Assembly (NCBI GenBank): GCA_037447605.1
Contig: CM074805.1
Coordinates: 744,001 to 808,000, forward strand
Origin: Zygnema circumcarinatum SAG 698-1b
Lineage: Eukaryota; Plantae; Zygnematophyceae
Length of the DNA: 64,000 nucleotides
Reading direction: 5' to 3'
Position 1 is the first letter of the stretch. Each line of letters opens with the position of its first letter. Both the position numbers and the translations under genes were made by a program. The notes beneath the pieces were generated by a model. The model made no database searches, was not told the DNA's origin, and saw only the letters and a program-made list of their open reading frames with translations. Below, one piece after another: positions 1-58,870 of this stretch.

Positions 1-774
1 GCCGTTTGCTAAGGACCGGTTGGCAGGCCATCCAGCGCCTGAATGGCTAAATGCTTCACACATGTCCACCGACCTATGGATATTGGAACAGTTATCAACA
101 AAGTCTTGATTAAACCGTGAGGGCACATCATACATGTAGACATACTTCCCTGCACACTCTGCCGAGGGAAGGGGCAGGGTGATAGGCTCAATAACGGCGG
201 CACCCACGTTGTAATCCTCTTCATTCTCAGCTTCAAGTGGTTCAGTCTGTGGAACAGGCAATTCCGCACTCGCATTCAGCGATGCCTCCCATTGTTGCAT
301 AACCAAATCTGCTTCAAATCCCTGTCTTTCTCCTTCTGTTCCTCCTTTTTCGCCTCCCCTTTTTCCTCCTGCCCCCCCTACTCCTTCAGTGTAAGCTTTT
401 CCACCTTGTTTTCTCATTCTTTTGCCTTCTTCACCCATCATCTCCGCGATTACTGCGCCCTGCAATACCTGCACTGTTCTTCGCTCCTTTCGTTCAACAA
501 TCGCCCCCGAAGCCATAAGTTCCTCCAGCAAATTAGACCTTCCATCCGTAAGTCTCGGAGTATCAGTTTTCAGTTGAATGCTGAAGCCACTGGTTATCTC
601 ATTGCTTGCTCCATAACGGAACTGGAAGTAACTCGGCGCTGACAACCACGACTGTACGCCGAAAAGTAAAGCCACAACACAGAGGAGGAAGACGGGCAAT
701 ACCCGACATCGCCGACCAGTTGCTCTCCGTTTTCCAAGCGCCAGATCCAGCATAAACTTTCGCACCCGCATCAT
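1..774 (-). CDS. GT47 exostosin-family glycosyltransferase, MUR3/KATAMARI1-like clade; 3' end runs out of the window
   Basis: Open frame from ATG 774 to base 1, absent from the ORF track because it has no stop. Contains a type II TM segment (VLPVFLLCVVALLFGV), a long stem, then ECAGKYVYMYDVPSRFNQDFVDNC...DMCEAFSHSG, the typical N-terminal motif of the GT47 catalytic domain. Confidence 0.8.
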   Translation of the reverse strand, partial: MMRVRKFMLDLALGKRRATGRRCRVLPVFLLCVVALLFGVQSWLSAPSYFQFRYGASNEITSGFSIQLKTDTPRLTDGRSNLLEELMASGAIVERKERRTVQVLQGAVIAEMMGEEGKRMRKQGGKAYTEGVGGAGGKRGGEKGGTEGERQGFEADLVMQQWEASLNASAELPVPQTEPLEAENEEDYNVGAAVIEPITLPLPSAECAGKYVYMYDVPSRFNQDFVDNCSNIHRSVDMCEAFSHSGAGWPANRSLANG

Positions 775-1837
775 TGCTTCCAAAACTAAGCCATCTCATT
801 TCCCTGCATATCCCTCGCAGCAAAAACTCTCTGCTTGATCGTTCCGAACCCTTCCTCTCATCAATACTTGCAGAATCCAGCTCCTTGTCTGCAAACTGTC
901 ACTCGCATTGGCAACCACCACTGCCCAGCGCGCCGGAGAGAGGAGATACAGTAGCTGCTCTGCCCTCCTTGCAACTCACCACAAAAGGGAGGAGCTTCAT
1001 TTTGACGTGTCAGTAGAAGCCTGGCCTTGAAAAAATTCCAAGGCCCAGGAAAAACCCATTGCCACTTCTATGTCCATGCTGTTTGAGTTCTGGTTTTTTT
1101 AGTCGGTGAGAACTGTTCACAAAACGGGCAGGTCGGAACTGCTCGGAAACACTCCTAACTGCATGTAAATGCTGCCCGATGGAAAAAAAAGGACGTTAGA
1201 ATCTTCAACCTTCAGTAAATTTTTCAAATATCGGAATATGACGGAAAAAATCGGGATTTGCAACGATATTAACGATACGTACGGATAATTCAAAATCCAA
1301 TTCGTGCAACGGCTAGAAAGGACACCCGAGCCACAACTTTGACTTCCCGCCGGCCCCGCCGCATGCCGGCATGCGCGTGTCAGGAACAAGGGTTGTTCAA
1401 CATTGCAACCAGCAACATGCGAACTCGAGACTCGCATGTCGTAAACATGGGATTCCTCCTCGCTTGTTTGTGGTATTCAATTCTTTTCAGTTTCACAAGG
1501 TTGCCACTTGTTGAAAACAAACGTGCAGTCAATTGCAGAGATCTACACGTTCTACACGTTCATGACATGAGGTACGCCATACATCACGCTAAAGCAAAAT
1601 TTCCTCACAGATTCAAACTTATTTTATTTCTGCTAGCCTTCTGTTTCTAGTTACAGCACAGTCATGCGAATGGGTGGTCGAGGAGCAGAGTACGCTGCTT
1701 GCTTTGTTTAAGAGCAGGAATCGAGAGAATGCCATTGGTTTTCAGCAAAGCACAGTTTCAGACGAAGCTCTGTGGAAGGAATGCTACACTGTCCTAAACT
1801 TTAGCTGCGCAGCTTTCTAATAACTCGCATACGCGTC

Positions 1838-3959
1838 TCAAGTGACCGGCCGTTGTTCCCCTCTGCATTGGAGACATTGCTCTCGGAGCCAATTTGCAGC
1901 TTCAAACTCTTTCGTAAAGAGCTGAGCGGGCTCAGACAACCCAACAGGGACATTCTCTTGGGCCTATGCATTGTTGAGGCATGGGTTCCCTTGGGTTGAC
2001 GTCCCCTGCATGACCACCTGCATGACCACCTGCTTGCCTCTCATCATAAATGTCTTTGACAAAAGAGTAAGCAATAATCTTTTTGAGTTCAATTTGGTAT
2101 GGTCTCTTGCATTAAGAAGGAAATAAAATGTAATTACTGCATATGACTGTGAAAGGGAATTTGTACCTGATCAGCTTGTTCAAGCCGCAGTACTACTTCC
2201 GACGGCAGGACGGCTTTGCCAGTTTGCTTCATCCGTTCTGCAACATGGGCGACCTGCTTGCGGGCCTCTTCCATCCCTCCCTCGTTCACAGCCTGATCAA
2301 TGAGCAATTCCCAAATCTTGAGCACCACCTTTTGGTTCTTGCCGTCGTCATCATCCTTGATGATCCTATTCCAGATCGCATAGTGTAGAATTTCCAAACA
2401 AATCTGCATATCACAGAACCATATGGCCTCCCATGGACGGAAGCAGGAAGTTCGCTTAGAAGTACGCTCAGTGTCAGCCTAACAATGACCTATTTCAGAG
2501 ACATGCTACAGAACAACTCATTCAGAGAGATTCTTGCAAAACCACAGAATAGCCGATGTGAACTCACCGCCCATAGGCCAAACGGCATCACATAGTTATC
2601 ATATAGCGCCTGAAGAGTCTGCATGTTATTCTTCAACTCCTCAATCTTCTGGCGAATTGGTTCACCGCCCGGTCTGAAGTAAGTCCATGCAACAAGTAGC
2701 ACACCAGCAAAATGGTCTCAGATACCCATTCTAACAACCACTTCTGCTGACAGTTTGTTCATTTAGATTCTAAATCCTCTGCTCGCTATCTTAGACCACC
2801 GTGTTTTTTTCCTACTCAAAAGGAAATGGCTGTTTTCTTGTCGTATGCATAACTGAGGCAGACGAACATTAGAAAACACTGTCAATTTGACTTTTCAACG
2901 TAGGCTAGACTTGCCTCCAGAATGAAGCATACATACTAGAGGCGTGGTTCAAACAACAACATGGGGGCAATTTCACTTACTTGGCACTCAATCGTTCTAA
3001 CTCCTCGCATATGGAATTTTGGAAGCGGAGAAATCGAAGCTTTTTACGAAGAAGCCGCAGAAAGTCTGGAACGCTGTCCACTCGCTTCAGGCGGAACGAC
3101 CTGTCCTGCACGTCCCGTTGATCTGAAAACATCGCTTGAAGAACAGCATCGGCCAAATAGTTCTGCCTGCACGCATTTTCAACACAGTCACGCTTCACTC
3201 AACCCAACCACATGCTACATAGTGCAACCCAACATTCACGTAACGCAATAGCGCATCATCAGCTTTACCTCTGTTCGAGGGAAATGCCGCCTGGCTGGGT
3301 ATGTCCACCTTCTGGCTGACTCAGCTCGGCAAGCTGCAAATAGACATGAGCTGCCGAGAAACCCTTGTGACGGTCGACATAACACTTGGCAGTAAGCTCC
3401 AAATGCTTTCTTTGCTCTGCAAGAATGGTGGCCTGCCGGCCAGGGAGCTGGATGGAAGATACACGAAGTTCTGACTGAGCAAGTCCTGCAGAACTTGTAG
3501 ACCCTGCAAATCCGAATCCAGGGGTGGCAGCAGACCCGAACATGGATCCCCCAAAAGCTGGTGTGCTTGCAGAGCCAGCAGGCGGGGAAGCCCCAAATGT
3601 GGGCTGCTGCTGCTGCGGAGCGCTATCTCCGAATCCAAACAGGGACGGCGTTACAGTGTTTGCATTTGGCTGACCGAACATCGATGAAGTGCCGAAGGGA
3701 GAGGCCGAAGAAGCCCCTTTTGCTGTTTGGAGAAAATAAATTAATGTCAAAATATGAAGGTTGATTAGGTCAAGGGCAAGAAAACTGTTCGAAATTTACA
3801 TTGAGTTGAGTCTTATTGAACACATTCACAAGGTCTGTGCACTGCTTCAAAACCCTAGAAATGCAATAAAGCAACAGCAGCAGCAGCAGGGAAAATGGAG
3901 AGAACGGAGACAAGGAAAGGCGCAAGGAGGAGGAAGTTACGAGAGCTCGCTCCAGACAT
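1838..3959 (-). CDS. Truncated Nup155-like protein (about 375 aa): FG-rich N-terminus plus Nup155 C-terminal domain
   Basis: Six GT-AG exons in phase: 3941-3959, 3269-3722, 2981-3166, 2568-2673, 2167-2403, 1838-1963. KHLELTAKCY..SAAHVYLQLAE, QNYLADAVLQA, LLRKKLRFLRFQ, LYDNYVMPFGLWAICLEILHYA and WELLIDQAVNEGG match the Nup155/Nup170 C-terminus. First and last exons are less certain. Confidence 0.75.
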
Positions 3960-4464
3960 GGCTGCGAGAAGCTTCCCAGCAGCACGCAGGGGCTACGCAG
4001 CGATACGGGGAGACGATAACCTAAATCCCTCTAGCTTTCTGACTGCCAATTCCCTCCTACCTTCCAGCTTCTCTCTCTTTCTCTCTCTCTCTCTCTCCAC
4101 ACACACAAGCAGAAGGAAGGAAGAAAGAAGGGATGGAAGGGAAGTTGGAAGGGAGGCGCCTTTAACGGGGGGCCGAAGAAAGCCGTTGGAAGGGAGGCCC
4201 GCCTTCCCCGCAAAAGGCGCCCCCAACGGGCGAGCCAGTGTACGAACTCACCGTTGAGGTACTGACTGATCGATGTCGTTCGCGAGAGACATCGATGTCT
4301 CTCGTGAGAGCGAGCGACATCGATCCCATGCCGTAACAAGTCCCCAACCGCATCACTACCCGCTGGTTCCATGCAATCCCGTGGAACGCAGCACGCAACC
4401 ACGCATTACAGTGCACACACAACGGCGGCCGCTGCGTTCCTGGAACATGACTGCACTTTTCAAG

Positions 4465-4769
4465 AACGAACGAAAGAAAGAAAGAAAGAAAGAAAAAAGT
4501 AGATGGACATGCCAACATGCGCAATGCACACTCATCCGCCCCACAACGCCGACAGATCGTGGCAAAGCGCAGCATGGTATAGCCCAGCCATGGACTTTCC
4601 AGCCGAAAAATGATGCCATCTGACCCATCCTGCATGCACGCATGCACCAAGAAGCGCAAGATCAAGGATGTACGGCAACGACAGAAGTGGCGTGATTTGA
4701 GTGGAGGGATTCGAACCCTCAACATTCGGTTAACAAAACCGTTGCTCTACCAGATGAGCTTCACTCATC
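4465..4769 (-). mobile_element. Candidate tRNA-derived SINE
   Basis: tRNA-like head (4696-4768), about 200 bp body, TTTTT followed by a (TTTC)n/(TTCG)n tail; flanked by the direct repeat TTCAAG at 4459-4464 and 4770-4775. Confidence 0.45.
4696..4768 (-). pseudogene. Degenerate tRNA-like sequence (Thr-UGU-like)
   Basis: Minus strand reads ATGAGTGAAGCTCATCTGGTAGAGCAACGGTTTTGTTAACCGAATGTTGAGGGTTCGAATCCCTCCACTCAAA. D arm GCTC/GAGC, T arm GAGGG-TTCGAAT-CCCTC and a 6/7 acceptor stem are present. A at position 8, a pyrimidine at 37 and mismatched stem ends argue against function. Confidence 0.7.
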
Positions 4770-4949
4770 TTCAAGTTTCATAAGAAACACTTATCGAGGA
4801 GATCTTCGTCACTGACGTGACACGCTGACCGGCCCCACGCAAGCATCGTCTCCACAACGAAGTACGAAAAAGTGCCAATGCAAAGAAGGAAAGTGAACAC
4901 GAGCACGACAAAGACGACCACACGCGAAGAACGAAAGCAAAGCTCGAAG

Positions 4950-5745
4950 GGAGAGGGGACTCAGGGGATGGGAGAGGAGGAGGGAGAGGGAAAGGGAGAG
5001 GGAGTGGGAGAGGGAGAGGGGACTCAGGGGATGGGAGGGGAGGGGCGCGGGCAGGGCACGGCGCGGCATGGCACGGCATGAGGTTGTGGATGGGGCGGCT
5101 CTGTGGGGGGATGTGTGTGTACCGAGGATGCGGGAGTCGGTGGAGGGGAGGAGGACGTGAGGGGAGGGGAGGGGAGGGGAGGGGAGACGAGAGGAGAGGG
5201 GACTCAGGGGAGGGGAGGGGACGGGAGGGGAGGGTAGGGGAGGGGAGAGGAGAGGGGACTCAGGGGAGGGGAGGGGACGGGAGGGGAGGGTAGGGGAGGG
5301 GAGAGGAGAGGGGACTCAGGGGAGGGAGGGGACGGGAGGGGAGGGGAGGGGAGGGGAGAGGAGAGGGGACTCAGGGGAGGGGAGGGGACGGGAGGGGAGG
5401 GTAGGGGAGGGGAGAGGAGAGGGGACTCAGGGGAGGGGAGGGAGAGGGGACTCAGCGGAGGGGAGGGGACGGGAGGGGAGGACGGGAGGGGAGGGGAGGG
5501 GAGGGGAGAGGGGACTGAGGGGAGGGGAGGGAATTACAGGGCGCGGCACGGCACGGCATGGGGGTATGGAGGGATGGGGCTATGGGGGATGGCTCTCTGT
5601 GGATTCGTGCATTTGTGCCGAGGATGGAGGAGCGCTCTCCTCTCCCTCTCCCATCCCCTGAGACCCCTCACCCTCTCCCTTTCCCTCTCCCTCTCCCTCT
5701 CCCATCCCCTGAGACCCCTCTAAGCCCTCTCCCTTTCCCTCTCCC
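4950..5745. repeat. G-rich polypurine minisatellite with a downstream inverted pyrimidine copy
   Basis: Roughly 50 bp units (GGGGAGAGGAGAGGGGACTCAGGGGAGGGGAGGGGACGGGAGG...) over 4950-5535; complementary CCTCTCCCATCCCCTGAG units at 5635-5745. Confidence 0.85.
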
Positions 5746-6298
5746 AGCGATAAGGATTGCGGTTGGCTCCTCTGGCGTGGACGGACGGCGCGCTGCCACG
5801 TCGAGCCCTCTCAACAACTCGCCGCCTGCCGTGCGCACGCGTGAGTCCGCCTGGCACGGTACAGTACAGTACCGTCCTTTCTGGCGGTGGGGTTCAAATT
5901 TTGGCTTGTTTCTGACTTTTAGGGTTTAGGGTTTTTTGCCTGGTTTGTTTTTGTTTTGACCTTTGGCGCGGCCACCTGCTGGCACTCCATCTCCTCCAAT
6001 CCAGGGGATTGGGACCCGGGGCTTTAGGTGTGTGTACAGTTGTACAGTACAGCATTCTCGCGTGCTGAAACTTGAAAGGTTCTGACGTCCTGTGGGCGAT
6101 GTGAGTTATCTGCTGGCTGGAAACTGTGGGCTGCTCCTTGCAGTGATGCGTTGCTCCTAGAGGAAGGAGGTGGTTTGATGCACTCTCCGGCTGAGGGAGA
6201 GGCAACTGCCAGCACTATCGATGGGTGTTGTGAGATGGGAGCGGTGAGGGTGCCATGGAGAGTCTGCAGGAAGTATGGAGGGGCCGGGATTTTTGTTA

Positions 6299-7145
6299 AT
6301 GGCATCAGCAGCTGGTTATCCAGGGGGCAGCCCAAATGGAGGAGATTGGGCCAGGTGATTGACGGAAACATTCCTTCCTTAATTGAGGCGATGTGAAGGA
6401 AAGCTTGTTGCGATTGGTTTGGATGGTTTTCTGTTCCTGGTTCGTCGCCTTGCACATCGCATGGAATGCTGCTTGCATCAAGCATTCGAAACGTGGAATT
6501 TTTCGTTTTCTAGCAGATGTTTCTTCAACGGAGTTCATTTTCTGTCCAAAAGTAACCTAGCCATTTTGTGTTGAGAGGCCATGCAAATGAAGGAAAAGTC
6601 TCGGTATATTGGACTGGCTCGCTCTATGTTGCTTGCCGGTTGCAAAGCATGGCACGACTGTAGCCTCATTCAAAACGGTCCTTCAATTGAAGTTCGAACT
6701 GCAGATGATGTTGAAAGAATAAAGGCTTCGTTTTGTACGTATTGATGCATTATATTATTAGACTTGGTAGATGAGATCCTTCGTTCCCTGAGGCTATATG
6801 GGGCTTCTGTGTTGTATGTTCTCAGGAATTCTGCCCACGGAAATTCTCCTCGCAGCTATGATCCCGCCTTGGGAGGGGCCCAAAGCCGCTCTGTAGCGCA
6901 TTCCGCGGGAGGCAATGCTGCCTATCACAGCCACTCAACTCACAACAATGGCCACCCCTTGGTGACTCCTTACCTTACCAGCCTCAGCAGCATGCCTCTC
7001 TCCTTCACCCTTCTCAGCAGCAGCAGCAGCAGCAGCAGCAGCATTTTTTCCTTGAGCAGCAAGGCCACCTTGAGCAAGAGCAGCACCGGCAGATGATGGT
7101 TCTGCAGCAGCAATGCAAGGGCCTGCAGAAGCAGACGTGTTGCGG

Positions 7146-7183
<38 letters not shown>

Positions 7184-8726
7184 GCCTCCCTCCCTCCCTC
7201 CCTCCCTCCCTCCCTCCCTCAGCTGGCCAGCTTCCAGCGCTCGCTGGAAGGGAGACAGACAATGACAATGCCGCTGCTGCCCTTCAGCTCGGCCTCCAAC
7301 GCCAACAGGCCGTTAACAACACAACGCCCACAGCGGGCAGGCAGGCGGCTTCCCCCAAGGTGGTGCCTCTAACGCTCTCGCTCGCAGCCCGGGGGCGGGG
7401 GGCTCGGGAGAGTCTGCAGCCGTTGTGGACGTAGCCATGGGCTGGGCGGGAGCTTCCCTTCAAGTCTGGGGGCCAGTGGGGCTCCTCCCGACCAGGCCAT
7501 GGCTAATGACTAATGGCTAATGGCTAATGGCTAATGGCTATGGCGGAGCAGCCATGGCAGAACGCACGCAGTGGCTGAAGGAGCCGCAGTGGGATGTTCG
7601 GCAGAGGGAGGGTACGGACAGAGCGGAGGTGAGCCAACCTTCAACCCCATTCAAAGCGTTGTGGGTGGGTCAAGAGCGTTTTGCACTCTTCTATCGCACT
7701 TGTAAGGTTTTGATGGAAGAGCTGTTCTCTTATACTTACTGCTTGCTTTGCTGTTGTATGGATGCCATGGTTTCTCGCAGAGGAGAATCTGACTGATTTA
7801 CTCACCCGGATTCGAGATGAAGGATTGCAAGGTGCTTTGGGGGTATCGAGTAGTGTGACCCTGAATAACATAAGGCTGTGCTCCCAGCCTTTTGGAGAGT
7901 CTTATGTAGGATGCAGAAGATGTCTTAGTGGTAACTGGAGTAACGTTGTATTGGAAATTCCTCTTATGTTGTCAGTAGTGTTGACACAGTGTGAAGCCTA
8001 CAATCGGGATTATCCCGTCAGATTGCACCCTGGGGGTCTCTCTGTAGCATGATGCAAGATTGCACAGGCTTATGGATCAGCAGTCAGTGCTGTCGTACTG
8101 AAGCTTCTCAAACTCTTTTGCATGTCAATGAACTTTGGTGTGCGTAGTTTTTGTTACCTTGGGTTGACGTCCCCTGCATGACCACTTGCTTGCCTCGCAT
8201 CATAAATGGCTTTGACAAAAGAGTAAGCAATAATCTTTTTGAGTTCAATTTGGTATGGTCTCTTGCATTATTGGTCTGATCTGTTTGGATGAAAGCGATG
8301 AAGAATGATGTAAGAAGGTGTGGCATGTAAGGGCGTCATGAGCTCACGTGGAATATGTATGTGGGCACTGTGTGTGTTGCTTCAGCTGCACTACCGTCAC
8401 GCTCTCTCCCTGAAACAGCCCTGCAGCCCTCTTTTGACTCTAAAACAGGAATTTTCACAACATTTTCCTCCTGTTTTGGAGTCGGCTCCCCGTCAGACAT
8501 GCTATGTAAATTAGTTCTTATGCTTGATAAGCAAAATCCAGATTCGTCAGGAGAAAAAAGTGAGCTGGTTGGCGGAATCTCCTCCTCCAATAGGCAGTCG
8601 CCCTCTTGGGAGATGTTGGTGGAAGATGAGCGAGGAAGAGGGAGGGATGGGGTAAGTCGAGCAGCTGGGCATGGAGGAAACAGTGAGAGGAAGGAAGCTG
8701 ATCACGTTCGCGAAAAATCCGGTTAG
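6299..8726 (+). pseudogene. Possible Gln-rich hypothetical gene with a frameshift; extent uncertain
   Basis: MASAAGYPGGSPNGGDWA splices in phase to NSAHGNSPRSYD...; one extra C in the run at 6955-6958 would join it to the polyQ frame (QPQQHASLLHPSQQQQ...). Later exon-like pieces (EENLTDLLTRIRDEGLQ). No family recognised. Confidence 0.3.
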
Positions 8727-9082
8727 TGCCTCCCTTTCCATGGGCAGAATCGCCTACAACCTGCAATATTGCTGCAAATTTCAAAGCATACCGTTCAGCG
8801 ACAGCCTCTTATTAGGTATCTCTCACCTGCTGCATGCATTTGAAATGGTGCGAATATGCCGCCTCTCAACTTCATTCACGTCGCCAGAGATCGCCAGAGC
8901 TGTACGGAAGAAAATGGGCCCCGGGTTACTGTAACTGGATCCCTCCAATCGCACAGAACCAAGGTGGCAAAAATTGGAGTCCACACGTGCGACTTAACAC
9001 ATTGAGTTTTGTACAATTCGAGGGACCAAGTTACCGTACTCCCCCCCTAATATTATTTTCGCCATGGTTTCGGCAAATATTA

Positions 9083-9358
9083 GGGGGAGTCAGACCTTGA
9101 CCAGCGCCAAACCAATCCGCGAGCCCGTCGGGCCAATTCCGCGTTGTAAGGCAGGCCTTTTTCGCCAAAAGTGGACGTTCGACAGGCTCGGGCGCCGAGC
9201 CTGTAACTCATTTTTGTAACCTATTTCGAAGTACGGACGGGACAGACAGGTTCGGGGGGAGCCGCGGTTTCCGACCCGAATTCTGCAATCGAAATCAATA
9301 CCTTTCCGCCGGCGGAATCTTTCAATTCCGCGGGCGATGGTCAAGGTCTGACTCCACC
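9083..9358. mobile_element. MITE family A (TIR GGGGGAGTCAGACCTTGACCA, TA target duplication)
   Basis: About 21 bp TIRs with TA on both sides; inserted into a decayed family B MITE whose halves lie at about 9040-9082 and 9359-9430. Confidence 0.8.
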
Positions 9359-10478
9359 TATTGGGTGAAAATCTTGGAATTTGCAAATATAAGGAAGTCC
9401 GTGTTACAAATAGGCGGGCGGTATTATGTTAGAGTCCGGCATGTGGCCGTACAGTAGACCCCCCCAATATTTTCGCCCCTCTTATTTTCGCTACCCAATA
9501 TTTTCGCCCTGATCTTGCCAAAACCACCTTTTTGTACGGTAAGGCTGTGTTAACCGTACTAGCCGTACTGACCGTACTGGACGTACTGTACTAGCCTTAC
9601 GAACCNNNNNNNNNNNNNNNNNNNNNNNNNNNNNNNNNNNNNNNNNNNNNNNNNNNNNNNNNNNNNNNNNNNNNNNNNNNNNNNNNNNNNNNNNNNNNNN
9701 NNNNNACTGACGGATCCGCCCGCTCGGGCTTGTACTTGACATATTCATATTCAAAGGTCACTCTTTAATCGCATAATCCGGTGAGCCGCTGAATGAAAAA
9801 TGCAGGAAGGCTGGCGCCATGTGTTGGCGGCTCACTCTAACAAAGACACCATCCGCCTAGGCGGACTCTACCGCAAAGCCAGCCAAGGCTTGACCTATTC
9901 GGCTCCACGCTAGCCACCAAAGTTACCTGGGCAAGGGCTAATAATCAGTGGATCACATCACAAGGCTCAAGATCTATTGTCGCTAAGCAAGTAGATGGGA
10001 TGTCAGTGATGCTTGTTTGTCTTTTTAGTGCCGGGCTTAGTATTTGTATTTGGTTGTGTAGTTTGTTATTGTCTTGTTCTTCTTCCTCTTCCAAAGAACA
10101 GATGCTAAGTGAGAGAGAGAGTTCCATGCCATAGATAGAGAGAGAGAGAGAGAAAGAGTCTTCACATAGCATTTATATCCCCATTCAAACTCAGACAAAG
10201 ATTTCAAAGGAGAAGATCCTTTCATTGTATCGACTATCCCCACCAACTCACCGGGTCGGGGTGACTTTCCAAAAATACAACCTTTATCTAAGTTGAGTCC
10301 TGCTTTCCCTTTGCCGCCACTATGCCAAGCTACCATCTTGTTTTACCCTGCCTTACATTCCTCCCAATGACCAATGATAACTAGAAGCCTAGTTAAGAGA
10401 CTAGCCGAGGAGAGGACAGGGGAGGAGAGCCCCCAAGGAAGGGCTCTTTGCGCATCGAGTCCAGCCGCCGGTGGGAAC

Positions 10479-13400
10479 TGTTAGTGTTAGTGTGCTATAG
10501 TTAGACATTGTACGGGTTCACAATTCGCTAACATTGTTGCGGGTCCTCGGGCCAAAGTCATGAGATTCGGGCTTAGTAGTGTTCCCTGTGAAATACGGCC
10601 GGGCCAAATGCCTGCGGGTCTGCACGCCGGAGATGTCGGTGATGTCGGCGAACCGCCGTAATTCTTAGTGCGGTCCGCTGGATCGCGGATCAGGCCGGAC
10701 CACGGAGGAGACCGAGCCGCCAGCCCACGCTGACAGTGTGAACGGCTGCTGAAATGCGACACGGAGATTTCGCCAGCGGGACGGCGCTAATGTGTAATGT
10801 GCGCTACGAACGAATATTGGCGGCGGACGCCAGACGGACGGGCGCTAAGTTCTCAAGGCTGAACGACGCATAAGTTCGGGGAGTGGGCGGGCGACCAGGC
10901 CACTTTAATTCGGACCAGGTCGGGCAACCGGGCGAGGTTTGCGAAAAGACCGCGAAAGCCGATGTTGAACGCACTGGTCGGCCAATCCATGAGGGCGGCC
11001 GTAATGCGACATCGGTCAACAAGGAAGATGTCACGTAAATACGTACCATGGCGTATATAGGTTTAGCTTTGTTACGGCGATAACCACATTAATTACCGTA
11101 GTCCCGGACTTATTCTCAGGCCTCGCCGTGTTAAGCCGGGCCGCCCCGCTTGTGTCGCAAGGCAGTGAGTAAGGGAGAAGTAGCTATAGTGAGAGGGGGA
11201 GAACTTCATGTGGGTGACATTCTTATTATAAAGGAGTTTTAGAGCCGTGAGCTTTCTCCTCTATACTCTCTCGTGTGTGATTTCCGCTGTGCTCGTCTTT
11301 GCGTTCATTCTGTGAGTTATGGGCTATGAGTGAAGTGAGTTAGAGTGAGAGAGAGTGAAGATGTCTTCATCGGTGGGAACCGGAGTTCTAATGGAGAGCG
11401 ACACGCGAGGTGGCGCCGGAGCAAATGGAAGCGCATCCGCATCTAACAAGTGGTATCGGCCAATGGTGGCGTACGGTAGGACCACGGAAGTTCAAAGATT
11501 CCCAGATTCACGGTCAAGACTGGCGCGTGGAGATGGCGGCTGGTTCCTTTGCTCGTGGGCAAGGGACCGTTGGGGTACGCTACATCTTCATCAAGGCACC
11601 GTGCTACCGGAGTGGGTTTACCGCTGAGCGTGCCAGCTTCCAAGTGGCGCCGCCATGATGGAGTGCCATGACAACAAAGCGCTCACCCGTGATTGCCATG
11701 AGTGTGAGGGGAAGTCCTTCGCCCATGTCAGAGGATCTCCACTTCACATGCTATGTGGAGGTGCCAGAAGAGAGATGTATGATGTAAAGGATAACGCCAC
11801 GATAGTGAGTCTTTTACACGCAATTTGGGAAGATGAAGATGACTTCGATGAGAAACTGAAAGTGAATATATGGTCGCTCATAATTTGATGGAGAGGTTCT
11901 CATAGCCTACGTAAAACCGTTGTGAGAGTGACCATAAGATCACCCAGCCTTAGGGATTGACCTCTGTGATTTGATGGCAGCCGCAATGGACTGGCCCTAA
12001 TCTAACTCTAAAATGACCCTGAGCAAGAAGCGGAGGATCAAGGAGGAGGACACCGCCCAAGACACCGAGCACCGAGGAGAAGGTGTTAGCACAAGACTCA
12101 CGACAAGACCAAGAGGAGGTGTGCGCCAAGTCGACCGAGGAGAACGCTCGCGATGTTACACGCGGTGGGCAAGATCGCCACTACTCTACATCAAGCATAA
12201 GAACAAGAGTCCCCAAGATCGGGAGGAGGAGGCGCTACCGCATTCGCAAGAAGGAGAAGAAAGGCTTCAAGGATCTGCCTAAGTGCAAGCATGAGAGGTC
12301 ACAGCACCGAATGCGTAGGGTCGAATGAGACCAATCTCAGATGGCCGAAGCGTCCGTTCTCGACTTTGTTGGGAAGATCCGTGTTCAGATCTCGCTGCCC
12401 CTCGTTGATCGACTTCAGCGCCTACACACATGTGTATGCATAAAGTGTGATGTTCTCCACGTTGGACACGCCGAGAAGACTCGACCGCTCACTCAAGAAT
12501 CGGAGAGGGAGTGACAGCCACGGCGGGTGGAGTAGTCAAGATGATTCTGAGACGCGCTTCCGTCATCTACGTAAGAGGAGAGGGAGGAGCCGCTTATGAC
12601 GTGGTGGATACCTACACCCCCAGCCAAATGTAACTTCATGCCCGTTAGCTGCGGTGTGCAAGAGGGGGTACGGTGATCACGTTCAAGGAGAAGTTCATGT
12701 AGCCTGGCTTCACGCGCGATCGGGAAGCGCCGTTGAGGGGTAAGGAGAAGGGAGGCCTGTGATATTCTCATTATAGAAGGATGAGGATGAAGATGTGATG
12801 GTCGTAATGAAATCGCCATAAATCTCGCATCGTAGGACTTGACATCTTAACCATCGGGCTGCAAATGTACTTGCCGCTAAGGGGCTGGTCCGCGGGGTTG
12901 TAGGACGTAGATGTCGTGGAGAAGGAGCCCTGCAAGGAGGTGTAGAGGGAAGGCGACGGAACCATTCACAGAGCTGAGAGGAGGCGCATCATGCCAGAGA
13001 AATCGGAGTCAGTTCACACCCCACCTGTGGCCCCGCGGACACCGCAACGCAGGGAGGAGCTCGGTACTTCATCACTTTCTCGGATGATTTTCGAGGAAAA
13101 ATTTGGGTGAAAATTCTCAAGAACAAGTCCGAGGCTTCTGAGCCTTCAGAGATTGGGCGCACTGTGATGAGCTGCAGAGAGCCGGACGTAAAATCAAGAC
13201 TCGCTGCATAAATCCGAGGGAGTCGCTTCATGGAGTTCGGGCGAAAATCAAGACTCTCGTGGAATTAGCATGAATTCCTCTCAAGCCCCTACTCCTCAGA
13301 GTAATGGAGCTGCCGAAGGGTAATAGACGCTGGGGACACATGCTTTACCATGCCTCATGATTCCCCTTCCGCTTCTCGGGAGAGGCGGTGATGACCCCAG

Positions 13401-14446
13401 CCTACCTTTTTAGAATAGATGCCCATCTTTCGCTCGGGCGACCGTGTTCCCGAGGAGGTGAGTGGGGAGAAAGCCCACGGCTTCCCACCGGTTGCTTTCG
13501 GAGCGCTGGGCCGCCGGTCGCATAGCGCCGGGCTGGCGAGATGTAAGAGGAAGTTTGACCCGCGAGCCGCTGAAGGATATATGTTCTCGGCTACAATATG
13601 ACAACCGCGACCTGCTGTGATTTGGAACCCAAGGAAATAAGGAAGTGCAGAGCTCGAGGGACATCACGGTGACGAGAAAGGGCTGCATACGCTAGGTGAG
13701 ACCCAGCCCCCAAAGACAGATTGGAGATTGTGTGATGAGGACGGGAGACCACGGGAGAAGGCGCTGAAGCCTTCTCGTGTCCCGCATGGAGGAGATCAAA
13801 GATGCCGCGAGAGCCGGCGAGCCGGATCAGAGCAATGCCAACGCCGCAGGCGAGGCGAGTCAACCCGGGTGCCGCAAAGGGAGCCGAGAAATCACTCGAG
13901 ACGCGCCCCACTACACACTCACCCGCCGATGAGGAAGACTCCGGCCTAAACCGACCTTTGCACGGGACAGTATCCGAGGACTTAGATATGGCTTCTAGAG
14001 AGACGCCATGAGGGCAGCGATGCTCTCCGGATTTGTTCCTGAATTTTCTTCAACTCGAGGAGTGCGGGAGAACGCAGGCGACCGCTGAGGAGCACTGCGG
14101 TGGTGAGGAGGCCTAAACGATATAGGCCGTCGCAGACTAACCTGATGCAGGAGAGAGTGCCTACGGATTCTGCTGACCTCGCAGGAGTTGCCCACTGCTA
14201 CATGATCACTGAGCCGCAAACCTTCGAGGAGGCTCACGATGGGGTCGATGGAGCGAAGTGGCGAGCAGCGATCGATAGCGAGTGGAATAGTCTGATAGAG
14301 AACGGAACGTGGCGACTGGAGAAGCTGCCGAAGGGAAGGTGAGCTATTGGATGCAAATGGGTGTTCAAGGTGAAGCGCAAGGCGAACGGGAGTGTCGACC
14401 GTTACAAGGCGCGGCTGGTGGCGAAGGGATACAGCCAGAAGTACGG
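10479..14446 (+). mobile_element. Decayed Ty1/Copia LTR retrotransposon, truncated at an N gap
   Basis: LTR TGTTAG...CTAACA (10479-11448) followed by PBS-like TGGTATC at 11451. Broken gag; integrase remnant GGARYFITFSDDFRGKIWVKILKNKSE (about 13050-13135); RT start [62 protein letters not shown]. Confidence 0.85.
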
Positions 14447-14666
14447 NNNNNNNNNNGAAAAATGATCTCACTCCCTTAGGAGTTTTAGGCTGAACAAGAC
14501 AGCTATAGAAGTGATGCAAACTACTCAAAGAGACCCTCGAAGAGCGGTCAAACTATCAAACTGTTTGCAGTGAAGAATGCCTTCCAATGAAAGGTCTGTC
14601 AACCTCTTTCGAAACTCGTCTTTCTCCCATCCAATTACTGAAAAATCAGACTCGACGGTAGTAGTA

Positions 14667-14799
14667 GGGGGTGTCAGACTTAACAAAATGTTACGAACAA
14701 AAAAGTTTTGTAAGTACTCCGCCGCACCAGGATTGCGATGTCACCAAAGTACTTGTTCTGGTCTCAAACGTACGAACAATTTTTAAGTCTGACACCCCC
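14667..14799. mobile_element. 133 bp MITE (TIR GGGGGTGTCAGACTTAA, TA target duplication), related to family A
   Basis: Perfect 17 bp TIRs with TA on both sides. Confidence 0.8.
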
Positions 14800-15840
14800 T
14801 AGTGTTGGGAAATAATGAACGTCCGTACGTGCACGGTTTCGTCCGTACAGTCCATATTTACGTGTTTTTACAAAACCAAGTTAGGGGACAGTCCCCTATC
14901 TTAAGCCGAAATCCCCTATTTGAAGAGGCCTGTATATTAGCCTTATGGTCCGTACTAGCCGTATTAACCGTACTGTACTAACCTTACGAGCCGTACTAGC
15001 TGTACTAGCCGTTACGGGCTCAAGACTCTTCCCGCACGTGCCGCCGTAAGAGGCGCTCGTTCCTCTCCTCATCTTCGTGACTTCGATTCGGTACGATACG
15101 ATACGATACGTACGAATAAACAGGAACTCTAACCTAATACCGCCCGCCTATTGTTAACACGGACACCCTTATATTTTCGCTACCCAATATTTTCGCCCAA
15201 CATTTGCCGAAACCATGGCGAAAATATTGGGGGGGTCTACTGTACTGTTTCTCTCTCTGTACGAAGGCGCATGGCCGCCCGGTGGACCCTGCCGCGAGCT
15301 TCTATTGGTGCCGTACGTTTAACCACACGACATCCTATTGGTGACGTACATATATCGTACGATTTAGAGATTCTAACCGTATTTACCGTACATTGGAATA
15401 GCGTGACCCATGTTTGAAAACCGTTTCGATTAACAGATTTTGTATTGAAAAATTAGGCCAGGTTAGGTAAACACCCCTAATACATCAGCACAGACTTACC
15501 GTACTAACAGTGGTTTCGGCAAAATCAGGGCGAATTTCTTGGGGAACGCAAGGACGAGGGTGGAAAATATTAGGGGGGGCTACTGAAACCCGAGCGCCAT
15601 CTTTTTCGTACGACTCTCTGGGCCAGTCGATCAACAATTTCTGTACGAACCTCCGGGACCCCGCGTTTTTGCGATCCGCTAAAATCTCATTGTTGATCGG
15701 TGGACCCAAGGAAAACTCAAATTGAATACAAACGAATAATTAATTGTTCAATGTTCAATTAGTTCTCCATAAAAATTGTATTAACTAAAACAAATAGAAA
15801 TTCATTTCTCATTTCTCAAAATGAACCTTGTTCACAAATA

Positions 15841-16040
15841 GGGGGAGTCAGATCTTGACCATCGCTTACGAGATTCCCGAATTCCTTCTACTGAAAGTCA
15901 CGACTTTCGTGTACGAATTCCCGGTCGGGATCCGCGGCTCCGTCGTTCACAGCCGTACCGAAATGCGTACCTAGCCAATGCTTAATTCGCCCGACAGGCT
16001 TACGAAATTGATTTGGCGATGGCCAAGGTCTGACTCCCCC
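15841..16040. mobile_element. MITE family A copy
   Basis: TA-GGGGGAGTCAGATCTTGACCATCGC ... GCGATGGCCAAGGTCTGACTCCCCC-TA. Confidence 0.8.
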
Positions 16041-16167
16041 TAATAATATAGGGTTTTTTTTATTATCAGAAACTGGTTTTGAAAATGAAAACAGATTTTG
16101 TTTGAGAAGCCAGAATGTTGAACTTCTTTTTTTCTCAACCTGTTCGGTTTTCCGGTACAGTACAGTA

Positions 16168-16358
16168 CAGTAGACCCCCCCAATATTTTCGCCATGGTTT
16201 CGGCAAATATTGGGCGAAAATATTGGGTAGCGAAAATATAAGGGTGCGTGTTAACAATAGGCGGGCAGTATTATATTAAAAAGTGGTTTTGGCAAATTCA
16301 GGGCGAAAATATTGGGGAGCGAAAATAAGAGGGGCGAAAATATTGGGGGGGTCTACTG
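16168..16358. mobile_element. MITE family B, intact, Tc1/mariner-type
   Basis: TIR CAGTAGACCCCCCCAATATTTTCGCC at both ends, TA duplication; CAGT termini are typical of Tc1/mariner. Confidence 0.85.
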
Positions 16359-17333
16359 TACTGAATCCTAGACGGCCGTACTGAGGGAGGTCCTTCTGAG
16401 ACCTGGTTACAGTACGTGCAGGGGAGGTCTTATTTGCATAATCGTCATCCATCCACACCGTCCATTGCACGTGTAATCGACGACCAATATTGCAGTCCAC
16501 CCGCTGACCAAATTTCGCGGTCCTTTCTCCCAAGCTCAAATTTCAGCCCTTCGGATCCCCCCGATTCTGCGGCTGCAATTCTTCATCGTTCAATCCTGGC
16601 CGTCCGTTTGATACCCGCAGGATAAGTTTTCGACCACTAGGCTATCGGCGTCGCACATGCGAAAGCAGTTTGATCCGTGTTTGTTCACACTGCCTAGGTC
16701 GATCCGTCGTTCTCTCGCGCCCGGCCTTTTTTCGCGCTGAAGCTCGAATCCGACATATAAGAGCCGTCGGATTGAGCGTGCGGATCCAATTTTTTTTCGG
16801 AATCGGACGGCTCTCGGTAGCCGATCGAAAGCACAATTCGTCAGAGAGGGTCCGTACACCGAACTTGGCGGCTTCCAGACCAGCCCCCCGAGCCGTAGGC
16901 TCGAAACGTTGAGGTGGCTCGGATGAGGCTCGAACTAGCCCCGGATAAGGCACAGAACAGGTGCGGCGGCGGTGCGGGCCAATCGCACGGCATGGAACCG
17001 CCTTAGCGTTGAAAACCGCTCACACGGTGGAGCCCAAAAACTGCGCCGTCGTTGTCTGAAAGGAGACGGCAGCCGGCAAAAACTTTGACGACGGTCGGCA
17101 GATTTTGGCCGGCAACCGGCCTGACCGGCAGCTCTGGGGGGGGGAGGGCTGCAGGGGGGGGGAGAGAGAGGCTGGTTTAAGCAGGAGGCGGGAGGATTGG
17201 GGGGTTCTTGGAGGCGCTGGCGGAGCTGCAGGAGCCTGGAGGAGAGCGGAGGAGGGGCAGAAAAAGCGGCTGGAGGCAGAGTATGTGTGGTTGAGGAGGT
17301 TTTGGGCCCTGTTTGATCCTGTTTCTGGAAAAA

Positions 17334-17888
17334 ATGGCTGCTCCTGGAAGGAGGTGTGTGCGGGTGTATCCAACAGTGCGCCATGGCGGGAGGGACGTGG
17401 ATCAGGCGGGAGATGTGGTACTATGCTCTCCCCCCTCCTTGTCAAGCAAGGTATTGAACGGGAAGGAGGTGGTGAAGGCAGAGGAAGAGCGGGAGGTGGC
17501 GATGAAGATGCGCAGGATGGAGTGGGAGAGGCGGATAAAGGGGGATTGTGAGAGCAAGACGAGCGAGCCGAGAGCACCAGAGGAGGAAGGAGAGGAGGCC
17601 GAGGACGACGACGAGGATGACGAGGAGGAGGGAGATGATGACGAGGGAGAAGAAGGTGAAGAAGAGGGAGAGGAGGATGGAGATGACGAGGGAGATGAAC
17701 CAGGAGAAGAAGGCGGAGAGGCGGGAGACGAGGGCGACGAAGGCGACGAAGGTGATGAAGATGAGGGTGATGACGACGATGCCGAGGGAGAGGGTGCTGA
17801 TGAGGAGGACGACGAGGAGGACGACGACGACGAAGATGAGGAGGATGAAGAAGAAGTGCCTGCGAGCAAGAAGACGAAACGAAGCTGA
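17334..17888 (+). CDS. Hypothetical intronless ORF with a long Asp/Glu tail and C-terminal basic motif
   Basis: About 95-residue D/E/G tract ending in PASKKTKRS. Start uncertain, no family recognised. Confidence 0.35.
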   Translation: MAAPGRRCVRVYPTVRHGGRDVDQAGDVVLCSPPSLSSKVLNGKEVVKAEEEREVAMKMRRMEWERRIKGDCESKTSEPRAPEEEGEEAEDDDEDDEEEGDDDEGEEGEEEGEEDGDDEGDEPGEEGGEAGDEGDEGDEGDEDEGDDDDAEGEGADEEDDEEDDDDEDEEDEEEVPASKKTKRS

Positions 17889-19247
17889 GCTAGTTGTGCC
17901 CGCTGGTCTCCTGTTGCAGGTGGTTACATCCTACTACCTGCAAACAAAGGCTACTGAATAGAGCTTAAGGCTGGATCCTGTTTTTTTGAGGTCGACTGCG
18001 ATGAGGTTTCTTGTTACTTTCTCTTAATTTCTTTTCTGTTACTGTGCTTTTCCTGCTATTTTTTTTGTTAGTAGCTTGGTTGTACCACTATTGTCGACAG
18101 TTGAGAACACCGTCTATAGTGTAAATGCTGTATAGCTCTCGACATTACAGTTTCAATGTGGAAGACTCTATTTTTTCGAGATCTGACGCTATCTAAAGCT
18201 TTGCTTTTATCTTTATTTTGGTCAAGTTTTGAGTCGCAGTTTCAATCTGAGTTGCCTCCATTTGGTTTAGTTTGCTTCTTCATTCTCAGATTATTTTCAA
18301 GAATCTGCAATGTATTCGTGATTGTCGTTTTCTCATTGAAAGACGACTTACTGAGATGGAAGAGGCGTGATGATGATAACTGATAACGTGTTGTGTTGAT
18401 AACTCCTTTTGATGAAGAGTTGCCGTGTCGTCTTGCAGGCCGCTGCTCACCGGGAGTCTTCACGATCTGGCCATGGCCTCGTTCTCTGGCTTAAACGTCT
18501 TTGAAGAAGAAACATTTCAACTTTGGACAGGGCAGGGGATGAGGAGCTTAGCCTCAAGCTGCTTTATGGGGGGAGGGGGAGGGGAGGAGGCCTGCCGCTT
18601 TTTGTAGCCCAATAGCTTTTAGAGCATCCGACAGGCTATTTGCTTAGGTCTTCATCCCTTTTCTAGTTGTCTCCGGTTTAGGTAGATGCGCCTCTCCTGT
18701 TATCAAGGTCTTAGCAAGCCTGGTGCAGTCTGCAGCAAACGCCGGTCTGTTGTGTATGTCATGCAATGTGCAAGAGGTAGGAAGGTTTACAGAATCACAT
18801 TAAATTTTAGACTGTTGCGCCTGCAGTGGTCAAAGCAAATTTGGCTGTGAAATAAGCTGTGGTCTTTGAGAAGGCCAGAGTGGTTTTGTATACCAACAGC
18901 CGCAAATAACAGCCTTCTTTAGTTGAAAAATGTTTAGGATGGCAGCCAAGGGCTGTGAATGCGTCGCAGACGAACCTGTAATGCAAGTTTTTGTAGGCTC
19001 TTTTCATGCTGTCCTGATCGGGTTTTGTCTGGGTTTTTGATGATTTGCACCGCGTGCTTGTCTATGTACTTTCGCGTACATTTCATTTCTCTTTTCAACT
19101 TTTTGTGAGATTAATGCCACATCCTCGCATACTGTTTTGATTGGATTGAAAGCTGCTGTCAGCATCCAAATCAGGGAGATAGATTCTGATTTTTGAGACC
19201 GAGACTCTGGTTATTTGTAGTATATCAGTACCGCTGGCTTCTTGTCG

Positions 19248-19715
19248 TCATTCAACTTTAACACCAATGCAGATAAAAAGATAGCGATAATGTAAAAAGC
19301 ATATGTAAAAATAAGAGCGGCTGAGATTTGAAGATTGTGGAGTGGAAGGATATGTTGGATTCTTAGCACACTGAACAGATCCACAGTTCGGGCCAATCAT
19401 TGTATGATTGCATCGACAATCATTGGCAACCATAGGCAATCCAAGGTTGCAACCACTAGCAATGGCTGGTTGGGATGCGAACCAATTGCTCCCAACCTGT
19501 CCAATGGTTGATCCAATGGTAGGATTTTGGCATGCTCTGACGTCTGGAGGATCTGAACACAAGCGAGAAGTACTTGCAGTCATACATTTCCTATAATCTG
19601 CTATACAACGACAATCCCTGTGTTTAAAAAATCCGACTTTGTACAAAACCCCGTAACATTGGCTTACGAGATACCCAATAACAACAAAATACTTCAGAAG
19701 AATGGTTTCATTCAT
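19248..19715 (-). CDS. Putative secreted cysteine-rich protein (155 aa)
   Basis: Hydrophobic N-terminus (LLKYFVVIGYLVSQCYG), two DCRC-x-C-x-C modules, S/P-rich spacer and aromatic-hydrophobic C-terminus. Overlaps the stop codon of the upstream gene. Confidence 0.4.
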   Translation of the reverse strand: MNETILLKYFVVIGYLVSQCYGVLYKVGFFKHRDCRCIADYRKCMTASTSRLCSDPPDVRACQNPTIGSTIGQVGSNWFASQPAIASGCNLGLPMVANDCRCNHTMIGPNCGSVQCAKNPTYPSTPQSSNLSRSYFYICFLHYRYLFICIGVKVE

Positions 19716-22700
19716 GAAAGACTTCAATATGGCGGTTTACGTCCCGCTCACTGTGAAGGCCAAGGCCGCATATTGGACATGATACTCGACAGCTTTTCGG
19801 AAGCGTGTCCCCGCCCATATGCGAAACAATGTCCTCCCCTTCTGCAGACGCCTTTCCTTCCTGAAGTCGAGAGTCTTCCCTAACCTCTGCAGCTCCGTCG
19901 CCATGGATTGAAGACGTTTGATGCAACTGATGCTGTTGAGCTGAAGCATGGGCATGCACAGCCGCCATATGCAGATCGACTTCCTTCAACATGATGGGCT
20001 TCCTGCACACTTCGCATGGAGCGGTTCTTGAGCCGCATTCGCTCTCATGTTGAGTCAGTCCATGGAGACGGTCTCGAGGATTCACTGCCTCCCCTCGGGC
20101 GTGCACAGACCCTCCACAAAATTTGCAGAGGATTATTCGTAGAGGACACGTGTCAGTTCGGTGCTTCACCTGCAAGGAAGGAGTCCAACAGCTACCGTTA
20201 TTCTCAGTAATGACAGAGTGATGAGCACACATCCGCTGTCTCAAACTCTGACTTCCCCAAATCCTCCACACCTTGAACTGAATTTCCTAAACTCGCAAGA
20301 AAACCCTAAAAGCCCTAAATCTGCGTAGAGAAAATCCCGCAATAGTCACCTTTGCCTACTCTGCCGGACTCAAAAGGTAAAGAGCTTAGAGAGAACTGAC
20401 GCCTGCTATGTCTCAGTAACGCTTCACAACTATTTACACTACTCTACTGTCTATTGTCTATTCAGCTCTAATGAAGCCATAGCTTACCATGGCCTCCATC
20501 TCCATCACAGCCCCACACTCGCACTTTAGAGCTGCGTGGATGACAGTTTCATGTTTTCTGAGCTCCGCCGCCTTCATCGCCTCTCCGCACCTTCCGCAAT
20601 GGACATGATTTGCTCTTTCCTCTTTCCTCAAAACTGCACCGCATGATGGGAAGTCGCAAGTAACATTATGTCGTCGGCAGTACGCTTCATGCAACAATAG
20701 CGTTCTCTGTGGAACAAACTGCTTGCAGTTCCCGCATTGTTCAATGTCTGCAACCCCCTCTGTCAGAGTTCTCTTCTCAATTGCCCCACCCAGAAGCACG
20801 CCTCGACTTGCGCTCTCTTTCCTGTTTTTAGCATCCACTGAGACCTTAAATTTGGAAGATCCTCGAAAGCCATACACTCCCAAACTGTACTGGACTGCTC
20901 CCTTAAACTTTGAGCCATCCTGGGCAGACAAGACGATAACTTTAGTGCCCACATCATGAGATGACCACTGATGCTGATGCTGTGTAGGATAGAGAATAGG
21001 CTGTGAAGCTAAATACAAGTCTGCATCGGCTTCATCCCTAACGCTAGTGGACCCTTCTCCTTTCCAACCACCCATCTCCAACGTCACTAAGATGTCCATC
21101 TCAGCAGACACTACAGCTTTTGCCAAACTCTCATCCACAAAGAACTTGTAGTAGCGATACTTCCCCTCCTCTACTAGTCCTTCCTGTGCTTTCCCGAATG
21201 TGAGCGGGACAATGACTCTCGACTCGTTTGCTTTACTCTCCGTTGCAGGGGCCACATCTACCTCCAAATCTGTCTCAATCAACGAAACAGAAAGCTCAGG
21301 CTTCAGCTCCAACACTTTGAGCCGATACTCCAAACCTCCATATTCTAAGGCCAAAGTATCACCTACTGTCAGAGTTGAGTGATTGCGAAGCTTCGCTTCC
21401 AGAATAGCTTTGTGATTCTGAAGCTCGGCAAAGTCAAGAGTGTCTGGTTGGAGCTTTGCGAATTCTCCTCTAGGAAGTCTGATGTAGCGAATATGTACTT
21501 TTGAAGGTGGACCTGCTTTCTCTCCCCTGCTGTTCATTCCTAAGTTCAACCAGACATGATGTGGAAGCCCAACAAAGCCCTCCTCTGCACTGAACTCAAG
21601 AACACCTCCATGTGTGACTTTTCTCCTAATGCCAAGGTCCTCCGTGGAGGTCAACAATTGTCTTTGGGCCATTACATCAACGGATGAAGAAGGCCTATCC
21701 TGAATTCTGTTCCCTTCGTTCTCTTTAAAACTTCCTGCTTCCGACTGTTCCATATCTTCATCAATCGATCCGCTATCGCTGTCGACACTGATCTCAAAAA
21801 ACATCGGGCCCTTATCAAGGGCATGTTGGGACTCCAGCTCTGCCAAGGCTGATGCTGGAAGGGCAATTTTATCGCCTTTTTCAAGTGTTAATTGCGGGAC
21901 TAATTGTACATGGAACCGTATACCACCGCCTGCACTGATTTCCGCCTCTTCCTGGAGGAGAGCCTGGACATCACCCAAACAAGAAATCACATGAATGATC
22001 AAACCATACTACGGAAAGCAAGCGGGGAGTTACCATTACACTCTCTCCCTTCCGCCATTATTCTTTGTTCGGAAAAGGTATCGGTTATGTTGTTACAGGT
22101 GGAAAAGTTACGTACACTCAGCAAAGGTCAACCTTACGCCACACCAGAAAACCTACAACGAATTAAAACTGTTTCAACAAGGACGCACGGAGGCCAAGGG
22201 ACGGGCCAATGCCTTGAACTATGCACGATACAAAACTTTGAATAATAAAGGACATCACACACATACTGGAGAGATTTCATATCGTGTAAAAAACTGCGTA
22301 TAATCGCTACATTACGAATTAAAGGAATAAAGTGCCTCCCAGTTTGAAGCTCTAACTCTCCTTCTCATAAATACTTTCTCAATACGACACCAGGCGGTAC
22401 TGCATTTAAAGGACTACGTTCATCTCCTTATTTATTGGAAAGACCATAACAGAAGGCGAATTGGCGTAAAATGCACATGCTGTAATAGTTTCCAAAGGTC
22501 CATCTTAAGCTCGACACTGAACGTGATGGAAAGTGCCAAGACATATGTGGGGTGCAACCGATCGGTGCGAATTCATAGGTTCCTGACAAGCTGGCATGAT
22601 TACCGCTATTCTACGAGAGGAAAACATGAATATAGAACACAAAGAGAATACGAAAGTTGTTCCAAACGTGTTTACTCACTGCCTAGTCTCTTCACACGCA

Positions 22701-58520: not shown

Positions 58521-58870
58521 NNNNNNNNNNTGACTTCTGATTGACTGACAGACAGACAGACAGACTGACAGACTGACTGACTGACATGTTAGTTAGTAGC
58601 CTCCATCCTTCCTCAACACCCTCTTCAACTTCTTCCTTCGCCCTTCCACCATTCTCCCTCTCACCACACTCCATGTTCCTTCCTCCGCCTTCCTCCTCAA
58701 CACCCTCCTTCCTCCTCCTCCTTCCTCAACACCCTCTCGTTTCTCTTCCTTCGCTCTTCCACCATTGTCCCTTTCACCACACTCCATGTTCCTTCTCCCT
58801 CCTTCCTCCTTCCTCCTCCTCCTCCACCAATCATTATTTTTCGGTTTTTCGCATTTCTCTGGTAGGAAGA

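Follow-up and report, generated by a model that had tools for sequence, protein, structure and literature searches.

A putative truncated NUP155 derivative with an FG-repeat leader in an algal genome

FG domains are anchored via a handful of folds other than that of NUP155, among them the coiled coils in NUP62/NUP58/NUP54 and the autoproteolytic domain in NUP98/Nup145N. NUP155/Nup170, to our knowledge, is a pure scaffold protein without FG repeats, and we know of no described member of its family that carries an FG-repeat leader. The C-terminal domain of human NUP155 (residues 870-1391) binds the NUP98 linker and the N-terminus of GLE1 through overlapping hydrophobic surfaces (PMC5998080), and in Chaetomium the R3 region of Nup145N binds the NUP155 C-terminal solenoid (bioRxiv 10.1101/2021.10.26.465796). 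Here we describe a locus in a 64-kb stretch of algal genomic DNA (the whole stretch analysed, hereafter the window) in which an FG-repeat run and a slice of NUP155-like solenoid are joined in one putative reading frame.

On the minus strand, from 3959 to 1838, six exons with GT-AG splice sites were read directly from the sequence and, joined in frame, give a reading frame of 375 codons (Table 1). The exon lengths sum to 1128 nt, the junctions lie in phases 1, 2, 2, 0 and 0, and the introns measure 102-307 nt. This frame had been proposed in a sequence-only reading of the same DNA, and it is present as described; the 19-nt ATG exon proposed there likewise joins exon 2 in phase, as a sequence-level model, and an alternative start is offered by an in-exon ATG in exon 2, the M of SSMFG. 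The exons had a GC content of 0.50-0.58, against about 0.40 for the two introns in which it was measured. We trained a simple codon-usage score on coding stretches elsewhere in the window; in the model frame it was above zero for every exon part, and it was below zero for those two introns and for the sequence after the stop. Exon 6, with a GC content of 0.54 and a positive codon score, was exon-like, and the DNA after its stop was not. This contrast between exons and introns in GC content and codon score supports the exon model. Similarity searches and Pfam scans were run exon by exon, and aligned columns were likewise counted per exon.

Table 1 Features of the minus-strand locus, with splice junctions shared with pecan NUP155 and matches to the NUP155 profile (a slash marks a splice site)
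Feature	Position or site	Strand	Phase	Profile positions	Profile E value	Description
E1	3959-3941	minus				Putative first exon, read from the sequence; ATG plus 16 nt (19 nt)
E1 splice signals	GT donor (GTAACT) at 3940; AG acceptor at 3724-3723	minus	1			One base contributed to a split codon
E2	3722-3269	minus		994-1054	8.5e-8	FG run, then NUP155 homology
E2 5' part	3722-3487	minus				FG-repeat region, 78 residues
E2 3' part	3486-3269	minus	2			NUP155 homology; profile match from ~3462; ends AG/GT, splitting an Arg codon
E3	3166-2981	minus		1053-1113	1e-7	NUP155 homology
E4	2673-2568	minus	0	1144-1177	2.6e-5	LYxxYxxPFxLW motif; end in phase 0
E5	2403-2167	minus		1166-1246	4.9e-12	Starts ICLEIL; last homologous exon; donor at an ancestral intron site
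E6	1963-1838	minus				Putative last exon, read from the sequence; 41 codons plus TGA at 1840-1838
E2/E3 junction	Arg codon split AG/G after LEQ/LEK		2			As in pecan
E4/E5 junction	Between LW. and ICLE		0			As in pecan
E5 donor	After LE.A..		0			As in pecan

Homology to NUP155 was assessed with a profile of 19 sequences (P0001 and 18 NUP155; 1391 positions), which was run with all filters off against every six-frame piece of at least 15 residues in the window. Results showed that only four pieces matched in the whole 64 kb, namely exons 2-5, in collinear order over positions 994-1246. A tblastn search with P0001 agreed with this picture (exon 4 at E 0.002), and the similarity of exon 3 to P0001 gave a shuffle p < 0.0005. 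P0001 was the closest relative found; this protein of 809 residues carries Nucleoporin_C and is encoded by a transcript contig of a different organism (Logan SRR8128905). In an exhaustive search of 1.84 billion representatives with exon 2 it was the single match (E 8.9e-8), and its residues 419-474 aligned to exon 2 with 61% identity over 57 residues. Arabidopsis NUP155 (PDB chain 9sob_D) was matched by the helical part of exon 2 at residues 1078-1114 and by exon 5 at residues 1248-1318 (E 0.0066). Exon 5 also gave the best Pfam Nucleoporin_C score among the exons scanned singly (14.3 bits; cut-off 25.9); it retrieved nothing in a metagenome scan and only sub-threshold bacterial look-alikes from the ESM Atlas. 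The four collinear exon matches, together with those to 9sob_D and P0001, place the locus in the NUP155/Nup170 family by sequence homology. A weak exon 5-like match at 11811-11885(+) (E 0.086) was taken as chance, with no NUP155 profile match there.

Against the named land-plant NUP155 matches, P0001 showed 37-39% identity in nearly every case. In its contig (L001 1-163), an in-frame stop precedes the called start by 34 codons, and that start is not an ATG. The 809 residues probably reflect a NUP155 transcript that is incomplete or in part unspliced, rather than a natural short form.

In extent, the slice corresponds to about residues 1080-1319 of 1464 in Arabidopsis and to residues ~1073 to ~1250 of 1391 in human NUP155, that is, ~250 residues or about a third of the C-terminal domain (human 870-1391). 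Because the last ~145 positions are absent, the NUP155 piece comes, as judged by these matches, from inside the C-terminal solenoid and does not amount to the C-terminal domain. The sequence-only reading had assigned that domain to the locus; the homology stood and the extent did not, only positions 994-1246 of 1391 being present. Profile positions 1-993 and 1247-1391 had no match on either strand of the 64 kb, and no match to P0001 residues 1-418 (by tblastn) or 663-809 was found in the window. The N-terminal beta-propeller (Nucleoporin_N) was found neither by the profile, nor by tblastn with P0001 1-418, nor by Pfam in the upstream frames, where 82 minus-strand open frames at 3996-19579 contained no nucleoporin domain. 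With positions 1247-1391 absent, the C-terminal alpha-solenoid (Nucleoporin_C) is incomplete as well. The few kb downstream contained no NUP155 exon of any kind. N-terminal NUP155 exons were absent from the 60 kb upstream, which bears out the earlier statement that no further exons of the gene are recognisable upstream. The window is gap-free (no N) from 1 to 9605, and the studied gene lies inside this part.

On the 3' side, NUP155 homology stops cleanly at the exon 5 donor. Exon 6, the read-through with X at stops and the other downstream frames, compared with the C-terminus of P0001, gave shuffle p values of 0.2-0.3, and exon 6 and the downstream frames had no or negative NUP155 profile scores. 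The idea that Nup155-like codons (DAYAS..) continue past the stop at 1838, put forward earlier as a sign of erosion, was not upheld by these tests. Resemblances noted by eye (ENV, C+G..PV...Y and LRLKL...QW) were dropped for the same reasons.

The pecan NUP155 protein P0042 was mapped onto its gene for intron comparison, and three junctions of the locus agree with it in both position and phase (Table 1), which gives the locus gene structure in common with plant NUP155. These three shared intron sites indicate that the slice is an intron-containing genomic copy of a real NUP155 gene. A retrocopy origin was rejected in favour of a partial genomic duplication with introns, and the 3' limit of the slice lies at or in an ancestral intron. 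Pecan NUP155 has a phase-0 intron in the variable loop (QE/VRVVSS), and none occurs at that point in the window, where the upstream intron is in phase 1 and lies ~90 codons further 5' than the pecan loop intron, before the FG run. Intron 5 holds a ~130-bp dispersed repeat (1985-2114), of which a second copy of ~118 bp lies at 8153-8270 in the same orientation. The two copies were 87.7% identical by blastn over 130 bp, with one 12-bp indel and few other mismatches, and relative to the copy at 8153-8270 the intron 5 copy carries a 12-bp duplication. A search around the locus for signs of transposon capture, namely terminal inverted repeats and target-site duplications, found none.

The rest of the window holds other features. 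GC content rises up to 0.60 across 4001-6000, and a GC-rich minisatellite-like block of GGGAGAGGG / CCCCTCCC units at 4980-5720 produces long spurious open frames on both strands. Rfam identifies a full-length tRNA gene at 4696-4768 (-) (54 bits, E 1.5e-9), which is separated by 740 bp from the putative start of the locus, on the upstream side; its anticodon loop reads by eye as GTT (Asn), and ARAGORN reported no tRNA in the whole window. Assembly gaps occur as 100 N at 9606-9705 and as 10 N each at 14447-14456, 57256-57265, 58521-58530 and 62609-62618. The gene at 19708-22008 (-) encodes UFD1 N-terminal domains and, after them, zinc fingers of the TRAFD1/XAF1 and C2H2 types; its best database relatives are only 47% identical, and its named matches come from land plants, e.g. 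Physcomitrium and Selaginella, as would suit a streptophyte alga whose close kin are not represented in the protein databases. Copia-type retrotransposon remains lie at 60668-61879 (-) and 13900-14400 (+), with a gag open reading frame that contains a zinc knuckle (Pfam Retrotran_gag_2, E 2e-24), and more transposon-like open frames cluster around 12-17 kb. A legume-lectin domain (E 3e-25) was detected in the open frame 46012-46806 (-), and a fasciclin domain (E 6e-20) in that at 51330-52355 (-). Three overlapping open frames at 47904-48598 (+) share a repeated unit of the C-I-P-H-A-S-L-M-H-P-S type, a coding-looking tandem repeat. A 265-codon open frame at 1-795 (-) runs off the window start, and the part inside the window gave no Pfam match at E 0.001; its KYVYMYDVPSRFN motif near the edge resembles the way in which exostosin/GT47 domains begin.

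The first 78 residues of exon 2 contain 8 FG dipeptides (SPFG, SMFG, SLFGFG, PTFG, PAFG, SMFG, PGFG). Gly follows 8 of the 9 Phe residues, two residues are charged (one K and one D), and the composition is otherwise S/G/A/P/T/Q/N. None of 100,000 composition-preserving shuffles of the stretch reached 8 FG; the run cannot be attributed to chance. About 9 FG in about 70 residues had been noted before, and the cluster held while the count was corrected to 8 in 78. An FG cluster in a low-charge, disordered-type region is a feature of FG nucleoporins, and this part of exon 2 displays it; judged by its composition, the stretch is of genuine nucleoporin type, though short. With Pfam Nucleoporin_FG it scored 15.9 bits (E 0.024), under the gathering cut-off of 32.2, and its codon score was weakly positive in the model frame only. 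A DNA-level tandem repeat, which would suggest slippage, was not found in the FG region. When exon 2 was searched against the 1.84 billion representative proteins, its FG part had no match, and a word search with exon 2 returned none. According to the exon-wise and profile searches, the FG run passes uninterrupted, within the same exon, into the NUP155-like sequence, as the sequence-only reading had it. The run sits at the variable loop of the NUP155 family, and FG repeats at the corresponding point are absent from all 19 aligned NUP155 sequences, P0001 and the plant proteins included. The FG run thus takes the place of this loop without being explained by it.

The homologous part of the locus is well conserved. 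The slice was 41.7% identical to P0001 over 223 aligned columns and 34-38% identical to most of the land-plant NUP155 compared, for which P0001 itself gave 39-46%. Conservation reaches at least 90% at 63 positions across the 17 other profile sequences, which are mostly from land plants; of these 63 residues the slice keeps 40, and so does P0001, an expressed algal NUP155. A Tajima-type count gave 30 changes specific to the window and 20 specific to P0001, a difference that was not significant (chi-square 2.0). No stop or frameshift occurs in exons 2-5, and the frame is unbroken over the ~330 codons of exons 1-5, so that the signs of a pseudogene (frame breaks, premature stops, a faster protein rate) are missing from the homologous part. 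The unbroken frame and a conservation equal to that of P0001 exclude an old unused copy; the copy is either young, mirroring its parent, or under constraint. What was found here agrees with the structure that the sequence-only reading had proposed: a chimera in which an FG N-terminus precedes part of a NUP155 relative, with no NUP155 exons nearby on the upstream side. The evidence it gave for decay does not survive, since the homology past the stop failed its tests. Of the two outcomes it offered, an FG-tethering paralogue and a decaying partial duplicate, both are still live, and decay is not apparent in a slice conserved to the same degree as an expressed algal NUP155.

Our main reading, to which we assign a probability of about 0.5, is that the locus arose when part of NUP155 was duplicated in this lineage alone, and that it now constitutes a putative chimeric gene with a short open frame. 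It would be a stand-alone truncated derivative of the alga's NUP155 gene, arisen by partial genomic duplication, in which four exons from the middle of the C-terminal alpha-solenoid were kept. On the 5' side, inside exon 2, the slice would have been joined in frame to the FG-repeat stretch, and on the 3' side, after the ancestral exon 5 donor, unrelated sequence would supply a short tail and the stop. A full-length NUP155 presumably lies elsewhere in the genome, and we infer that the copy, specific to this lineage, either has not become an established pore component or has ceased to be one. If the gene is translated, the ~250-residue solenoid slice would be the only plausible anchor of the putative protein, bearing a short FG tail to which transport receptors could bind. 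Several observations point this way: the significant, collinear matches of exons 2-5 with no other NUP155 in the 64 kb; the three junctions identical to those of pecan; the loss of positions 1-993 and 1247-1391 from a locus with short introns, in DNA gap-free from 1 to 9605, with a tRNA gene 740 bp upstream; the FG run beyond chance; and the exon-versus-intron contrast in GC and codon score. The ~330 codons without frame break or stop weigh against it, as do the 40 of 63 conserved residues kept without significant rate acceleration. A neutral origin would, moreover, leave the FG run beside NUP155 unexplained unless the loop of the parent has FG repeats, and the loop of P0001 has none.

These same features lend themselves to a second reading, which we regard as possible but hold only tentatively, namely that the alga expresses a putative ~375-residue nucleoporin of new architecture, with an FG leader and a NUP155-derived slice as anchor. 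The slice would dock on a partner of NUP155 at an inner-ring or bridge position, where the FG leader would add sites for transport receptors beside the inner-ring scaffold; in a variant of this reading, the product would compete with full-length NUP155 for linkers. In a related reading, the parent gene already had the FG run, and the alga's own full-length NUP155 would then have an FG loop. The intact 375-codon frame with canonical splice sites, a conservation on par with bona fide NUP155 and a compact gene-like locus with exon-like composition as far as exon 6 are all consistent with a working gene. The strongest argument for it is that two nucleoporin-type parts adjoin, a pairing unlikely to arise by chance under neutrality, and that the FG pattern has the look of selection. 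In addition, NUP98 and GLE1 are known to dock on the C-terminal domain of NUP155 (PMC5998080; bioRxiv 10.1101/2021.10.26.465796). However, only about one third of that domain is retained at the locus (PMC5998080), a solenoid truncated on both sides may be unable to fold or bind, and the FG run is very short. The same architecture was absent among the 1.84 billion representatives and from the word search, but this absence counts for little, because the genome's own proteins are not in those databases. That its proteins and transcripts are missing there follows from the neighbouring UFD1-like frame, whose closest database matches reach the low identity given above.

It is unlikely that the slice belongs to the full-length NUP155 of the alga, with the FG stretch as an internal loop and the other exons separated from it by a very long intron, an assembly gap or a mis-join. 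The homologous exons do show the conservation expected of an orthologue, the FG run falls at the variable-loop site, near which land-plant genes have an intron, and the gaps at 9606-9705 and elsewhere in the window would leave room for such a break. But the last ~145 positions are missing too, although the downstream DNA is gap-free, and the N-terminal ~1000 residues were not found on either strand of 60 kb in which other genes lie. The other introns of the gene, moreover, span just 102-307 nt, and the pecan loop intron is in phase 0 whereas the exon 1/exon 2 junction is in phase 1. That there is no gene here, only chance similarity or an artefactual exon model, is very improbable: every exon singly scores under its Pfam gathering threshold, and exons 1 and 6 come from sequence reading only, but for exons 2-5 the reading is refuted by four collinear profile matches (E 5e-12 to 3e-5), the 61% identity to P0001 and the three conserved intron sites.

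What the locus would mean depends on which of these readings applies. If the gene is expressed, it would offer a natural experiment with two questions to answer: in what way partial duplication and fusion generate new FG nucleoporins, and whether ~250 residues of the NUP155 solenoid suffice for docking at the pore. If the FG run came from the loop of the parent, a scaffold nucleoporin would contribute to the permeability barrier. If the locus is only a young neutral copy, it would be ordinary.

Among described systems, the anchored FG nucleoporins (NUP62/NUP58/NUP54 and NUP98/Nup145N) resemble the locus in having an N-terminal low-charge FG stretch followed by a folded helical part that is predicted here as a possible anchor. 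The locus, known from its sequence, differs from them in that the anchor is derived from NUP155 and in that its 8 FG in 78 residues fall under the Nucleoporin_FG cut-off. With the NUP155/Nup170/Nup157 scaffold (PF08801 Nucleoporin_N plus PF03177 Nucleoporin_C) it shares the solenoid homology of exons 2-5, the hallmark motifs and the three intron sites. Unlike that scaffold, it has no beta-propeller; the first two thirds of the solenoid (~1000 residues) and the final ~145 residues are missing as well, and an FG-repeat leader stands in front of the slice that it keeps.
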